A DNA stretch of 64,000 nt from assembly GCA_040357565.1 (NCBI GenBank), contig JBDODJ010000008.1. One strand, given 5' to 3'. Both the position numbers and the translations under genes were made by a program. The stretch comes from Cercozoa sp. M6MM (lineage: Eukaryota > Protista > Endomyxa: Ascetosporea). Numbering within the stretch: the first letter of the stretch is position 1; each line of letters opens with the position of its first letter. This document shows, piece after piece, positions 27,069-42,879 of this stretch. The notes below the pieces were generated by a model, which saw only the letters and a program-made list of their open reading frames with translations, ran no database searches and was not told the DNA's origin.

Positions 27069-29179
27069 ATGATGCGCACGCGGGTCAGTGTTGCGCTTGA
27101 AGGCGTTTCCGCTCGCTTGCTAGACGTGTCTATAGCGAATGGGTCTGGTAGTGTGTGTGTGTTTTCAAACAATGAACGGGCAGAGCGATACTCTTTGGTT
27201 GCGCAGCGCCATTCTTGGCCGAGTTACGTGACAGATCCAGTCCCTTCTATAAAAACAAGCTCAACAATGATCAGGCCTTTTTTGGTGCTGCGGCGACTGC
27301 TGTAGACCTTCTTTAAGGATCGGGTGTTAGTGTATTTCAATACCAAGTGTCGCCCCAGTGGCCGACGACAAGTGTCTCGAACCACGCGAGCATTCTCACC
27401 GGCGTGCCGTCCGCCGAGCATCGTGTGCTACAGCCAGCTGGTACATTGTAGGCATCTGTGTGTCCATTGTTGTAGGCATGCCGTCTACAGCTTTTGTATC
27501 TAGACGTCCCCCGGTGCGATACGCAATTGAGTGACGTCGCTAAATCCAACGACACGCGTGTTGTCGTTGTAACCAATAGTTACGACAACAACACACTTGC
27601 AGCTTTGTTCAAGGTATTTCACTGCTTATGTACAGGTCTTGGTGTCTGTATCCGAGCGATCTAGTAGGATGTTGAAGTGCGACGAGTTGGGGCTTTCGAT
27701 GCGACGTAAACTTTGCCTTTTCTCCGTCTCGCTTCTTTGTTGTCTTTTTACCTGTCTTTTAACCTCGTTAGAGCCGGCTGGATGCCACCGAGTCTTGGAG
27801 GCTCCTCTTCTGGCGAAATCCGTAGGTGGCATGACCCGCTGCGACATGCCTGCGATATTGCACAGACACACGCCTTCGACGCTGATGACACGCGACCGCT
27901 GTGGTTGCACGTGATGGCATCGTGCGACTACTACGATAGTAAGGACAGCACGAGCTATGAAGAACACAGGTACCGTGCATTGCAGTATTGTACATATCCA
28001 TAGATTATTCGTGATTCGACAGATTGATGCCGCGAATCTACGCAATGGACCGCTGGTTGCAAAAACTCGAGTCAGCTGGCGTGAAGGTATACTTTTCTAC
28101 TATTTTAATCAACGCACTCTTGCGTACATTCTCAACAGACCCTCATGGGTGTCACTACAACCCATGGCGCCGCAGAACGGGCGCCAAGACCATCCCATAT
28201 TGTACAAAGCCCTGTGTCTGTTTTGGTTTCCTTATCTTTATACCTTTTCCGCATGTGCTGCTAGGTTGACGTGGATCAAGTGCTGCAACAAGCATGGTCG
28301 GATGCGACTCAATTCGAGCAGTACTCGCATGTGCACGCGCGCACTATCAACAAAAGGAGCAGTTCCAACACTGGCACCATCACCGTGCCTTACAAGATTG
28401 GTACTCGCACTGCAGCTGGTTTGTTGAACGCGTTTGGAGAACTTGTGCAGGAAACAGAGTGGGCACGTTGGCGTTCCGTACAGTCGTGTACCCGACGACA
28501 TCGCTCTGTTCTTTCATGTGCGTGTCGTTTGTACCCGACAAGGATGCTGATCCGGGTATGCTTCCGTGCGTACGTTTGTTTGTTGGAGTGTCATATACGC
28601 AGGTTTGTACTCAACATTGCTGTCGAGTGCCATGTCCGTTCTCCGAAACACTAAGGGTACCTTGATTTCGATTTGTGTCTCGTTGAATCGATATCTTCCA
28701 ATCCAATGAAGGCATCTACGCCGTGCTGACTCCAAAAGACGCCGCTGCCTCTTTCCTGATGCCAGAAGACGTGCTGGGTAGAGGAATGATAAAAGTGTAA
28801 AGAAACGAAGGTGTTTGACTCTGAATGCAACTTAGGCGACTTTGTGGTCATCGCCGATGCCGACGTGGGCTTGCGCGACACGGTTCGTGCGGGTAACCTT
28901 CGGGTTTTTTTACGATCAATGTGTTGTTGGACTTTATTATTGGTGTAAACTGAACTTCAGGCTGTGTGGACTGGGGCCTATCGCAAGCGGGCGGTTGCGT
29001 AGACGATGCTGGTAAATTTACTCGCACCTCTGCACTTTACATTGATCGTGAGCGAATCAGATGGCTTTCTGGCGATTAACGCACCTTTGACAAAGGAGTA
29101 TAAAAAGCGACTCAGCAAGGGCGCTGGTGCGCGCACGTTCAACCTCATCGACGCACTGCGCAATGGAGTTATCGAATAG
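27069..29179 (+). CDS. Alkaline-phosphatase-superfamily protein, phosphonoacetate hydrolase (PhnA)-like, with degenerate metal-binding motifs
   Basis: Hand-spliced: RVSVALEGVSARLLDVSIANGSAPFLAEL...WPTTSVSNHASILTGVPSAEH...RVVVVTN...MASCDYYDS...IYAMDRWLQKLESAGVKTLMGVTTTHG...GDFVVIADAD...SQAGG...APLTKEYKKRLSKGAGARTFNLIDALRNG. This is collinear with PhnA motifs (VDG...AGQAPFLAEL, PSFTNPNNLSIVTG, TDYxQH, TADHG, GDLxV, RSHGG, RNFD). Confidence 0.72.
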
Positions 29180-37600: not shown

Positions 37601-38552
37601 GAAATTTGGTTGGATAGGTGAGACCTTGCGACAACGAGTCGAAATGGCCACGAAGCGTTTTTCAGTTGTATTTTTTGCGTTGGGAGGGCAATGGGGTGGG
37701 GAGGGGAGAAACGACGTGTGTGCTAGGTGTGGCTGCTCGTATTGGCGAACTCAAAGAACGCGGCTCTTCCGCCAGCGGCTGCGTACATTTCCTACTTTCT
37801 GTCGCACACACACACACACGCACACACACACACACACGCACACACACGCGCACCTGCCCTTTCAGGATCGACTTGCCCAAGTCGAAACGACTGGATCGCA
37901 TTCTTGCGCGCGTTGTACTGTCACTTTGTGTCATCGCTATGTGTGCTCCTTTCACAACCCAATCCTATTAGGTTAAAAGTAAAGACAGTGTTCGCAGTGT
38001 CTTTGTCTACAACCAGGACTCCGTACCTTGTTACTAATACAGTCACAGTACCATCGGCGAATACATTGTGTGTGTGTGTGCATCAGTGTGCCAAGACACT
38101 TGCATCCATCACGCGTACCGCTCAGCGTGAGAAAAGGTCGCGTATCCTCATGCCGCGTCTGTTCGTCGATCGGCCTCGCCACTCGTATCTCATGTAACCT
38201 GTGGATTGGTGCTAATGCACTGGGTGTGTGCGAAGACTCCTGCAGGTGGCGGCGTTGTTGCCTCCTCCGATGAACATTGCTGTGGCTCTGCGTTTGCTGC
38301 GACGCCTCAAGTTCTCGTTGCGTGACGTATGTCGTTTGCTTATACTTGCGCTGACTGTTCTATCTGCAATTCCGCCACCACAGGTGTTTGCGTACTCGCC
38401 TGAGGCTCTTATACAAAGGTATACGTTGTTTCGCTCACGACTCGAACTCTTCAACAGGGTTTATGCTTAGAGAATCGTCTCTGACGTTGGATATGGTGTG
38501 TTCGTTACGTCAATTTCTGCTGCGCGGACAAGCAAGTCTCGTCACCTATTAA
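31256..38552 (+). CDS. FANCM: FANCM/Mph1-family DEAH helicase with degenerate C-terminal ERCC4/HhH-like region, many exons
   Basis: [93 protein letters not shown]...GQKQKQQQKIVRDFREG, VATSIGEEGLDVGECDLVVNYD, IRMIQRAGRTGRKRDG. The start codon is uncertain. Confidence 0.92.
31606..31780 (+). repeat. CAG/CAA polyglutamine tracts in the FANCM N-terminus
   Basis: QQKQQELEQQQQQQRQQQQQQQQQQH...QQQQQQQQQQQQQQKQQ in frame. Confidence 0.9.
36597..36720 (+). repeat. Coding 15-bp minisatellite (CCAAGYATCGACATG) encoding (PSIDM)x6 within FANCM
   Basis: PSIKT-(PSIDM)6-PSIKDM in ORF 36474-37454. Confidence 0.9.
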
Positions 38553-38773
38553 AACACACACAGACAAACATAGAGATTTAGGCCACCACCAAACGGTGGT
38601 GACCTTGGCTATATCGCAGCTGGCTTTCTCCTCCCATACCACTCTCGTGAGACATGCAAGTGCTCAAAGTTGCCGTCTTAAAAATGCTCGATCGACGAGA
38701 GTACAGCTAAAACGCGATCAGTTTGACTCAATCCGAGACCCGAAGTATTTCGACGACTGTGTAGGCATTTTAG

Positions 38774-41700
38774 ATGCTCGCGTGGACGCTGAGTGCTCTT
38801 GTGGGCACGGCCGCTTCTCAAGTCCAATGGCGAGCTGTGTAATTAATTTTGTGTTTTTCTTTGGTTTTGTTGTTGTAGACTTCTCTTCCCAGAACACACG
38901 CATTCGCGGAGGAAGTGCCGACCTTCGCTCGTCAACTTGACGCGTTTGCTGCCCATCTGCGCACAGAGGAGGTAGCCCAAATATCTCTTCTGTTGAAGTG
39001 CAAAGAGTATACGATAAGTAGAAAACCGAGTTCACTCCGCATCTGAGTGTTTTGCGACGTGACTGGGTCGACTGCAGGCTGCATGAGTGCTTCGCTTCTA
39101 TCCTTCTTTGCATTGGCACTCTGTCATTGATACCTTGGTAGTTGTGAGGCGGAATGTCACGACGCCTATTGCGTCATTGCGGCCGACCAAGACGGCCGGG
39201 GCGCTGCATTGTATACCCTTCAACATGCTTTTCCCTGTGCCCTCTTGTGTATGTTGTGTCTGACTTTCAGGGTGTTAGAGCACGCACGCCAATTGTATCC
39301 CAGCTAAATGCGTCCTCTTTGTCCCCGTACCCTATGTTACCTTTCTCCCCAGGTGCATTCACAAGGCAAACGAAGGGCAATGGTTCGAATACGCACGCCG
39401 TTTCTCAAAACATTGCTCTAAGAGTACCTTTGTTCCCCGATGTTATCTTTCCTGATATACCTCGGAACAGCTACGGATCTGGGTCGCTGCTCGCTTGAGC
39501 TGATCGACGACATTGGTGGTGCTGACCTTTTGGTCCGCGTGGACGCATGCATGCGTGATCTGGACGGCGTGTTCGACGAGCAACTCCAACAACACGCGGT
39601 TCTCGGTCTGCCCACTGACAAGGTGCTCACCAACGTTGTCGGTATCAACGATGACCTCTTTTACAAGGTAGCGTTCATGCCTTCTTTCACTTATCCCCAT
39701 GTCACCCTTTTTTCCGAAATTTCCTGTTTCCTTTCAGACCACGCTGACATGCGACGATGGCGAAATCGATCGTACGCGCTGTGGCGTCGTTCGGGCTGTA
39801 TGGGCTTCTTGCCTCCGACAGCCCGAGCTTATATCTTTGTGTATTCCTTCCCCTGTGCAGGTTTGTGAACCCTTCCGCGAGTGGGATCTTCCGCGCGGAT
39901 GCTTGCGCAAGTGCAGCGAGAAGCTGTTCCCGTTGCCACGCAAGATCACCTGTCAGGATGACTACGCCGGCATGCGTACGTTTATCAACCTTAGCCGTTG
40001 TATCTCATTAATCCTCCTTCCTCAACAGTGGAAGGGAGTGGTGCCGTTGTTGCCTTCAAGAAGGACGTCAAGTTCGTCTTTAGGAGTGCTCAGACTTTCT
40101 TCATTTTGCCCTTTATCCTTGCCCCATTCTCATCTTAGTTTATCGCCTTGTTTTCTTGTCGGTAGACGGACAGAACCAATTGATTGAAAAGGCACGAAAG
40201 CGCATGCTAGACCTTATGTTGTGAGTTTACCGCCGTGTCTCTTACCCCTTTGTAACTGTCCTCTTTGTCCCATGGTAGCGATGACGACGCTGACGACGAT
40301 AATGTCGAACTTGAATCGGGCGCTACGCTGATTAACGAGGTAGTTTTCCCATGTTCAAAGTGTCATCATGTGGACGTGGACTTGCCTTTTGAGAAAACAG
40401 ATCGTGGTGCACATGGGAAGCCTCAACTCGGAACTCACTGCTAACGTCAACGAACGTGCCGCTTCATGTTCACACCCTGCTGTACCCTTTACATCTGTAC
40501 TTGCGGGCCCTCGATAGGCTACAGCATCGTGGTGCGCGGTGACTCGGAACTCGTGATGAAGTGCGAGGCCACTTTTGGCTGCGTGCACGCTTTCATGACG
40601 CTGTCGCAGATGACGGGCGATGACAATGTCGGGTAGCTTTACCCTTTTTGTCTCCTATCTCGGCACCGTTTGTCTGTCATCCCCACCGCTCTTATCCTTT
40701 ACAGGTACGCCTACGTTCGAAACGGTCCGTGGCACATCGAGGACTGGCCGCGTTTCCCTCATCGCGGTTTTATGTTCGACACCAGTCGGCACTACTTTGA
40801 TGGTATACCCTTTCTTCTCTTTGACTTTGATTGCATGCGTTGTCAAGCCTTTATCTTCCCTCTTATTCCGGATAGTGTCACTTATTCTGCGCAACATTGA
40901 TGCGCTGGCGTGGACGCGCATGGTGACTTCGCCTCTTTTAACACCCTGTCCTTTAACCTCTTGCTCGATAGAACGTGCTGCACTGGCACATCACAGATTC
41001 ACAAACCTTCCCTCTTGTGGTGCTTGACATTTACCGCTCTGTTGCCTGACCCTGACCATATGGCCTCGACTCAGATCCCTGGCGTCGAACACCTGGCTCT
41101 CAACAGTTCCTACCCGAAGGAAAAGCGCTCAGAGTCGTCGCATGCCAAGCTGGTTGATTCACCCCGTGTGCTTTTTGTTAGCCCCTTACCCCTGCCTTAT
41201 CAGGCGCTGTACACGCTGGACGACGTCAAGCGCGTGATTCAGTACGGTTACGAACGCGGCGTGCGCGTCTTGCCAGAGATCGACACTCCCGGCCACTCCT
41301 AGTACAAATGTCTGTGTTTTGTGAAGAGAATCGAGATAGCTGGCTGGCTGTGCAGTTCCTGGGGTCTCGGAAAGCCCGGTATCACGGTGTGTGGCAACCA
41401 GCAGGTGTGTTTTTCTATACGTCTTTGCCCCCCTATACGTCTTGTCTTTATCCTAACGTGCTTCCTGTAGCCTTGGTGGGACTACTGCGCCGGCCCCCCT
41501 GTATCCCTGTTCCATTACCATTCCTTGTCGTGTCCTGCCTGCTTGGATGCGTGCTGCCTGCAGTGCGGACAACTGGACCCGACGAGCGATGTTATGTGGA
41601 ACACCCTGGAAACAGTGCTGACTGAACTGACGGCCGCCTTTGGCGACGATTATTTCCACGCCGGTTTTGACGAGGTCAACTTTCGTTGCTGGGACACTGC

Positions 41701-42799
41701 GCCGCACATCAAGGACTACATGCGTGACAAGGGCATGGTGTGTCTCTGTCTTCTCATGTCACTGCAGGTTGCTTTTTACCTGTCCTGCTTTTCCCAGACT
41801 GACTACCACGAGTTGTACCAAGAGTTCACCGACCGTCAGCACGAGTTCTTGCGTGGCAGAAACAAGCGCGTGATGGTGTGGTACGTATGAGCATTTCCTG
41901 GCACCAGCTGCCACCCTTACCCTCGTTGCCCCTGCGCAGGGAGGAGCCCTTCGCTGAGGACATTGCACTGGGCAAGGACGTCGTCGTTCAGGTTTGGCGC
42001 TCGCACGACATCTTGCGCGATATCGTGCGTGCTGGCCATGAGGTAAACGCAAACGATATCCAAAATTTACATGTTTAAACAGCCGGTTTTTCAACTTTTG
42101 CCCTTGTTAGGCCGTGTATTCGAATGCCGACGCCATGTACCTCGACTGCGGTCAATCTTCTTATGTCAACGGGTACATTTCTCCCTGCCTTTGTGTTGGT
42201 ACGCTAACTCAAGATAACAGTCAAAAGAGCTGGTGCGATCCGTACAAGAGCTGGCAGACCATCTATTCGGTACCTCCACCCTTGTATTTTCGATCTTGCC
42301 AGCACACGCCCTTCTTCAGCACGAGCCGGTTCCGGAGCGTCTGGGCCTAAGCCCGGAGGAGGAGAAACGTGTGTTGGGAGGTGAGACCTGCATGTGGACG
42401 GGCCAGACCGATCGCAGCAACGTCATGTCCAAGGTAGCAGCGACACGTTGTTTTAGTATCATCTGGTATCGAGCACAGGTGTGGCCTCGTACTGCTGCCT
42501 GGGGTGAACGCGCTTGGGTACATGTCCGCTTTCCTACCCTCCTGGTCAATTATCATCGTGTTACTTTCATAGGCACCGCGCACGCTGGACGACTGGTCGC
42601 ACGCACAGTCGCGTTTGCTCGAGCACCGCGAGCGCCTATTCCATCGCGGGTACTTCTTTGCCGCTGTGGCTTCTCTGCACGAGGATTAGGTGTTGTGGCG
42701 TTGTTAAACAGAGTGGACGCGACGCCCATGCAACCTGGCTGGTGTTTTCTGCGCAAAGACGGCTGCTCCAACCCAGATGGCGGCAACCCGCCCGTGTAA
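38774..42799 (+). CDS. Secreted/lysosomal beta-N-acetylhexosaminidase (GH20) fused to an N-terminal vacuolar-sorting-receptor-like thioredoxin domain
   Basis: Signal-like [16 protein letters not shown]; N-terminal Cys-rich domain ([53 protein letters not shown]...PRGC); GH20 part [56 protein letters not shown], catalytic [53 protein letters not shown]. Confidence 0.88.
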
Positions 42800-42879
42800 C
42801 GCGATAGTTGTTGCCTATCGTAGCGACGCCTGGACCTCTCGATCGACCATCCGTCGCGTCCACGCCTCAACATGCTCTC

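Follow-up and report, generated by a model that had tools for sequence, protein, structure and literature searches.

A GH20 hexosaminidase with a divergent N-terminal domain of vacuolar sorting receptor type predicted in the amoeba Cercozoa sp. M6MM

Can the central domain of a vacuolar sorting receptor (VSR) occur outside a receptor, and what would it do on an enzyme of the cargo class? This question is raised by a gene at positions 38774-42799 of a 64,000-nucleotide (nt) stretch of contig JBDODJ010000008.1 (assembly GCA_040357565.1; the whole stretch is called the window here). The DNA comes from Cercozoa sp. M6MM, a marine amoeba from fish gills that is now described as Lemnamoeba sinaloensis (Apofilosa, Rhizaria). 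An initial annotation of the window had joined by hand a VSR-like domain to a GH20 hexosaminidase. We consider it likely that the locus is one real gene for a soluble secretory protein made up of a signal peptide, a divergent homologue of the thioredoxin-like (TRX) central domain of VSRs, and a complete GH20 enzyme; the N-terminal domain (N-domain) may serve as a binding or assembly module.

The spliced N-domain was assembled from window coordinates and scored against home-built profiles of VSR central domains. For Pfam, PDB, Atlas, and the large homology searches, the queries were single exons or the only database protein identical to the region, MES1907690.1 (P0001), a 675-amino-acid (aa) "hypothetical protein" of Cercozoa sp. 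M6MM. VSR genes were gathered with a back-translated GRYCAPDP(E/D) pattern, which gave about 120 metagenome loci, many with intron-free full-length frames. When nine of these frames were analyzed with Pfam, eight had both PA and VSR_TRX, three of them together with EGF, whereas VSR_TRX was the only match in the ninth (L091, whose start is missing). The profile of the fetched central domains also recovered 8r4y and 9b1r, both structures of AtVSR1, at an E value of 1e-110.

Against the profile of 19 VSR domains, the spliced N-domain scored 61.8 bits by hmmsearch (E = 3.6e-21), with the match covering positions 22-228 of 232. The best of 2000 composition-preserving shuffles of the same domain reached 14.3 bits (mean, -1.4 bits), and the reversed domain scored -1.8 bits. 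Comparison with VSRs by hhalign gave a probability of 98.6% (E = 1.2e-15) over 178 columns, and BLASTP against single VSR domains showed 25-29% identity over about 213 residues, with E values down to 1.8e-12. By these measures, the N-domain is a very divergent homologue of the VSR central TRX-like domain (Pfam VSR_TRX), with a similarity far above chance, in keeping with the resemblance proposed initially. Among profiles restricted to one group, the protist-type VSRs scored best (51.6 bits), followed by the plant-like VSRs (33.0 bits), the single alga-like sequence L034 (30.1 bits), and the prasinophyte-like VSRs (25.8 bits). All four scored the N-domain above its own shuffles, for which the maxima were 7.7-15.9 bits. 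Single pieces of the domain were also compared with VSR alignment A1 by hhalign. They matched weakly, yet in collinear order: exon 3 at columns 50-56 (P = 1.3e-3), exon 4 at columns 80-88 (P = 0.017), exon 6 at columns 122-134 (P = 1.3e-4), and P0001 residues 15-115, from exons 7-9, at columns 142-235 (P = 1.3e-3). Exon 2 alone gave no match to A1.

The VSR central domain has a cysteine scaffold of six disulfides. The N-domain, a cysteine-rich segment of about 200-215 aa, retains 10 of the 12 VSR cysteine positions, one of them shifted by a few residues, and 19 of the 29 columns that are invariant across 18 VSR rows. The two missing cysteines are the CxxxC pair, which is likewise absent from the protist-type metagenome VSRs (L016, L029, L091, and L118). 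Three of these loci (L016, L029, and L118) encode short VSRs of about 460 aa with PA and VSR_TRX and no EGF match in Pfam, and L091 is a frame of 331 aa, lacking its start, with VSR_TRX only. Also retained in the N-domain is the four-cysteine insertion that comes after the first beta-alpha-beta unit and before the helical bundle; in VSRs it has two disulfides, and it has been reported as unique to them (PMC11052993). Its match to the receptor domain (BP-80/AtVSR1, PF25011; PDB 8R4Y, 9B1R, and 9DUP) is collinear over the full length, and the two share the FTPH strand, the RQLC helix, the W-x-x-Y-x-x-x-F-x-x-x-C helix, the C-M-x-D loop, and the terminal C-x11-C pair. VSRs also have PA, EGF repeats, a transmembrane helix, and a cytosolic tail, whereas the amoeba protein has none of these and carries an enzyme where the EGF repeats would be.

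In AtVSR1, the CxxC-type redox motif takes the form CxxxC at the start of helix alpha1, together with a cis-proline loop (PMC11052993). In the N-domain, both CxxxC cysteines at the thioredoxin active-site position are lost, the invariant cis-proline column (Pro189) holds Asn or Thr, and W53 is lost too. Because the CxxxC pair and the cis-proline are gone, the domain is probably redox-dead. The loss of both redox hallmarks had been overlooked in the initial annotation, as had two other changes described below, the loss of the GRYCAPDP signature and the replacement of a substrate-binding Glu of the GH20 part by Gly.

The gene model was built by three-frame translation and splice-site checks over positions 38700-42850. 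This reproduced the hand-spliced model, and every peptide string quoted for it was found in the translation. The gene has 30 exons of 24-197 nt and 29 introns, and its 778 codons form an unbroken frame that ends in a TAA stop (42797-42799). All of the introns are of the GT/AG type, and their lengths (42-80 nt; median, 58 nt) agree with the published mean for the organism, in which introns average 82 nt and number 13 per gene. The donor triplet is GTA in 18 introns, GTG in 10, and GTT in 1, with G at position +5 in only about 6. Micro-exon 5 was judged to be real because its product, VLEHARQL, which corresponds to V(L/V)ENLRQL in VSRs, aligns without a gap to the VSR-invariant L-R-x-x-C stretch.

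The junction of the two domains lies in exon 9, as had been claimed. The alignment to the VSR profile ends at model residue 232 (position 39914), and the Pfam GH20b2 domain begins at residue 236 (position 39924) with LFPLPRKI, so both borders stand three residues apart in a single exon without a stop codon. At the other end, exon 1 encodes a leader with a hydrophobic core of 13 residues that reads as a signal peptide, a prediction made by eye. The N-domain follows the signal peptide directly, with no PA domain between them, and GH20b2 then stands in place of EGF repeats. As the signal peptide ahead of the N-domain is the only one in the model, the GH20 enzyme would depend on the fusion for entry into the secretory pathway. 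Beyond the leader, no 19-residue window of the whole model reached transmembrane level (maximum Kyte-Doolittle value, 1.09). In six-frame pieces of 33-46 kb of the window, there was no match to the PA-domain profile or to the EGF/transmembrane/tail profile. The absence of the PA, EGF, transmembrane, and tail parts was thus borne out, and the encoded protein is predicted to be soluble, without a membrane anchor.

In P0001, Pfam places Glycohydro_20b2 (PF14845) at residues 118-242 (E = 6.3e-09) and Glyco_hydro_20 (PF00728) at residues 266-623 (E = 1.4e-90; profile positions 1-347 of 348), and single exons match GH20 domains as well. The closest relatives of this part are eukaryotic hexosaminidases, at 31-37% identity. 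As in human HEXA/HEXB, plant HEXO, and the insect chitooligosaccharidolytic enzymes, GH20b2 is followed by a TIM barrel, and the catalytic D-E pair, the Arg, the H-W-H motif, and the Trp cage are shared. Of the 48 columns with at least 93% conservation across 112 homologues, 43 are retained. Arg387, Tyr646, H-W-H, the Trp residues, and H-x-G-x-D552-E553 are all in place, and the HxGxDE motif (H548, G550, D552, E553) is intact, as stated initially. Compared with these enzymes, the amoeba protein adds a VSR-type N-terminal domain of about 215 aa and has Gly701 in place of the W-x-E Glu, which is present in 105 of the 112 homologues. From the motif, we take this Glu to be the probable counterpart of human HEXB Glu491. 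Glu491 of human HEXB binds substrate (PMC2492878). In addition, Lys414, which is invariant in GH20 homologues, is Arg here. The changes at these two sites may alter affinity or specificity. In general, the GH20 part looks catalytically competent and, judged by its domains and residues, is complete and ordinary apart from Gly701.

Such a combination was not met elsewhere. PF25011 was absent from the precomputed Pfam annotation of all 120 other GH20 relatives, and none of them gave a signal with the VSR profile (best score, 2.9 bits). A homology search with the VSR alignment revealed no unusual architecture among the 120 matches listed, which were mostly plant VSR fragments, and literature searches found no mention of this architecture or of PF25011. 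The statement that no example had been described agrees with these limited searches. With the first 117 residues of P0001 as the query, a word-based search returned only the self-match and Atlas returned nothing usable; exon 7 gave only chance-level matches in PDB by phmmer. New here are a GH20 enzyme whose accessory domain was not seen in any of 120 relatives and, at the same time, a VSR_TRX domain that is not part of a receptor.

From exon 7 onward, P0001 and the new model are the same, except at the exon 17 donor (41016 versus 41019, a difference of one codon) and at intron 27, which P0001 retains as 15 in-frame residues that are absent from all homologues. Against the VSR profile, P0001 scored 5.3 bits. 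The N-domain has gone unannotated so far because P0001 omits exons 2-6, which hold most of the VSR signal. The features of the new model are collected in Table 1.

Table 1. Features of the hexosaminidase gene in the window
Feature	Position	Strand	Basis
Whole coding region	38774..42799	+	GT/AG junctions, continuous frame
Exon 1: start codon and predicted signal peptide	38774..38836	+	First ATG past in-frame stop
VSR-type TRX-like central domain, model residues ~31-232, exons 2-9	38906..39914	+	Profile match, hhalign
Micro-exon 5, 24 nt, encodes VLEHARQL	39271..39294	+	GT/AG, phase fit
Exon 9, junction exon, 115 nt	39861..39975	+	Single open exon
GH20 domain I (Glycohydro_20b2, PF14845)	39924..40612	+	Pfam on P0001 and exon-level match
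GH20 catalytic TIM barrel (PF00728)	40754..42580	+	Pfam on P0001 and exon-level matches
H548-A-G550-F-D552-E553, catalytic Asp-Glu pair	41657..41674	+	Alignment with 112 GH20 homologues
Gly701 in place of W-x-E Glu	42401..42403	+	Alignment with 112 homologues
Intron 27, 45 nt	42434..42478	+	GT/AG; homologues without insertion there

As to function, the N-domain would be a redox-inactive, disulfide-stabilized module for binding or assembly. The enzyme would most likely act on terminal N-acetylglucosamine (GlcNAc) or N-acetylgalactosamine (GalNAc) in the lysosome, in the phagosome, or outside the cell, and the N-domain may aid its delivery, its stability, or the capture of a partner or substrate. 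Such a role is possible, and it is the one that we tentatively prefer.

Several points weigh against the account given so far. The gene and the fusion are predicted from genomic sequence, and the start ATG of P0001 (39440) falls within intron 6 of the new model, so the public model leaves out exons 1-6 and the signal peptide. Seven N-domain exons taken singly gave no Pfam match at E values up to 10, and the Pfam VSR_TRX profile (curated cutoff, 27 bits) did not match P0001, which of the N-domain holds exons 7-9 only. The GRYCAPDP signature, invariant in 17 of 17 aligned VSRs, reads D-A-Y-C-V-I-A-A in the N-domain, with only the Y and the C left. Cargo site 2 of AtVSR1 is the loop of residues 232-245; the corresponding loop here is five residues shorter and not conserved. 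In the domain-swapped AtVSR1 trimer, the PA and TRX domains of neighboring chains dock. The PA-docking residues of AtVSR1 are not conserved in the N-domain, and an insert of about 10 residues with an extra cysteine pair (C199 and C209) splits the docking stretch, so the idea that the N-domain docks on PA is, at the residue level, unsupported by conservation. As neither the PA-docking nor the cargo-loop residues are conserved, a VSR-like binding function is unsupported in detail. This weakens the roles proposed initially for the domain, namely self-sorting, piggy-back cargo binding, or substrate targeting, as do the points on location and receptor class below.

The origin of the N-domain and the setting of the enzyme add to these points. 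A phmmer search of 1.84 billion representatives with exon 7 returned this same gene, one repeat protein (P0002), and nothing else, and the same exon revealed no paralogue of the N-domain in the organism's own genome. The tree gave the N-domain a branch length of about 10 changes per site and no firm position, and no donor lineage is claimed for that reason. With this long branch and the most conserved VSR motif lost, the domain could be decaying. The "lysosomal" location given to the hydrolase is assumed from the GH20 family. The initial description of the domain as coming from the enzyme's "own class of sorting receptor" is likewise unverified: no canonical VSR was found in the genome with PF25011 in six frames, the VSR alignment, PA, the YCAPDP pattern, or a full VSR protein, searches that also missed the domain of this very gene and so carry no weight.

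The alternative that survives best takes the N-domain as a relic, a VSR fragment captured by exon shuffling that now serves as a spacer or a cleaved propeptide with no binding role. It would account for the very long branch and unusual composition, for the loss of GRYCAPDP, the CxxxC pair, the cis-proline, and W53, and for the fact that no paralogue or orthologue of the N-domain turned up with exon 7 or P0001 residues 1-117 as the query. However, eight downstream scaffold cysteines and the four-cysteine insertion have been kept and a further pair has been gained, the frame is open across nine short exons, and the hydrophobic motifs FTPH, RQLC, and W-x-x-Y-x-x-x-F are retained. We regard a relic as unlikely.

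It is also rather improbable that the N-domain is a built-in sorting adaptor. Such an adaptor would dock on the PA domain of a receptor or capture co-cargo, and in both cases the enzyme, equipped with a piece of its own receptor, would sort itself, and perhaps other hydrolases, to the lysosome or phagosome. The unconserved docking and loop residues described above bear directly on this proposal. If it were true, the VSR central domain could work outside a receptor.

Another origin was considered because, in structure, the VSR central domain resembles GILT/DsbA most and the look-alikes without PA in Atlas are GILT families: the N-domain might derive from a soluble thiol reductase of the GILT/DsbA type and not from a receptor. 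GILT is soluble and lysosomal and belongs to the same DsbA-like thioredoxin fold class. Yet an active CxxC is present in GILT and the VSR-specific insertion is missing from it, whereas in the N-domain the situation is reversed, with no CxxC, the VSR-specific two-disulfide insertion (unique to VSRs; PMC11052993), and the motif spacing of VSRs. Genuine VSR TRX slices match only PF25011, and not GILT, at E values up to 10; a match of about 60 bits to a VSR-only profile would therefore be unexpected for a GILT protein. This origin is very improbable.

Least probable of all is an artefact of the gene model, in which exons 1-8 would come from another transcript upstream or the contig would be chimeric. 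In its favor, the fusion is predicted from genomic DNA and the public annotation lacks exons 1-6. Against it, a single stop-free exon holds both the last part of the VSR-like domain and the beginning of GH20b2, P0001 itself links exons 7-9 to GH20, removal of the upstream exons would leave the hydrolase without a signal peptide, and all phases and splice sites agree.

Some further observations concern the surroundings and the searches. The next gene upstream is FANCM-like and lies on the same strand. In the 1.3 kb upstream of the hexosaminidase gene, there was no coding signal, only a microsatellite; this is of the CA/TG type (it reads THTHTH or VCVCVC) and lies at about 37790-37870, in the gap that separates the FANCM-like gene from the start of the hexosaminidase. 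The protein P0002 (388 aa, with tandem repeats) matches exon 7 at an E value of 1.4e-4 in five stretches with the motif C-x-I-E-L-L-D-K-x-G-G, and the match is probably due to chance or a repeat artefact. Elsewhere in the genome, the protist VSR alignment picked out a weak PA-like frame on contig C32, at 27993-28787 on the minus strand (locus L122:1417-2211). This frame of 265 aa scored 23 bits with our PA profile built from VSRs and 15 bits with the Pfam PA profile. No TRX signal was found in about 10 kb downstream, and the frame was not accepted as a VSR. The same contig holds an unbroken frame of 1569 aa (C32:20637-25343, minus strand), which is unusual for an intron-dense genome.

The central domain is the least understood part of VSRs, and recent structures disagree on whether it serves in cargo binding, in trimer formation, or as a thiol oxidoreductase. 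Here, the truncated public model MES1907690.1 is corrected, and the VSR_TRX family is extended, by one gene of one species, into Rhizaria and into a non-receptor context. On this cargo-class enzyme, the domain stands naturally without PA, EGF, membrane parts, or the redox motif, which makes the gene a dissection carried out by nature. Should the enzyme depend on the module for its targeting or assembly, it would follow that the VSR central domain binds independently of redox chemistry and of PA.

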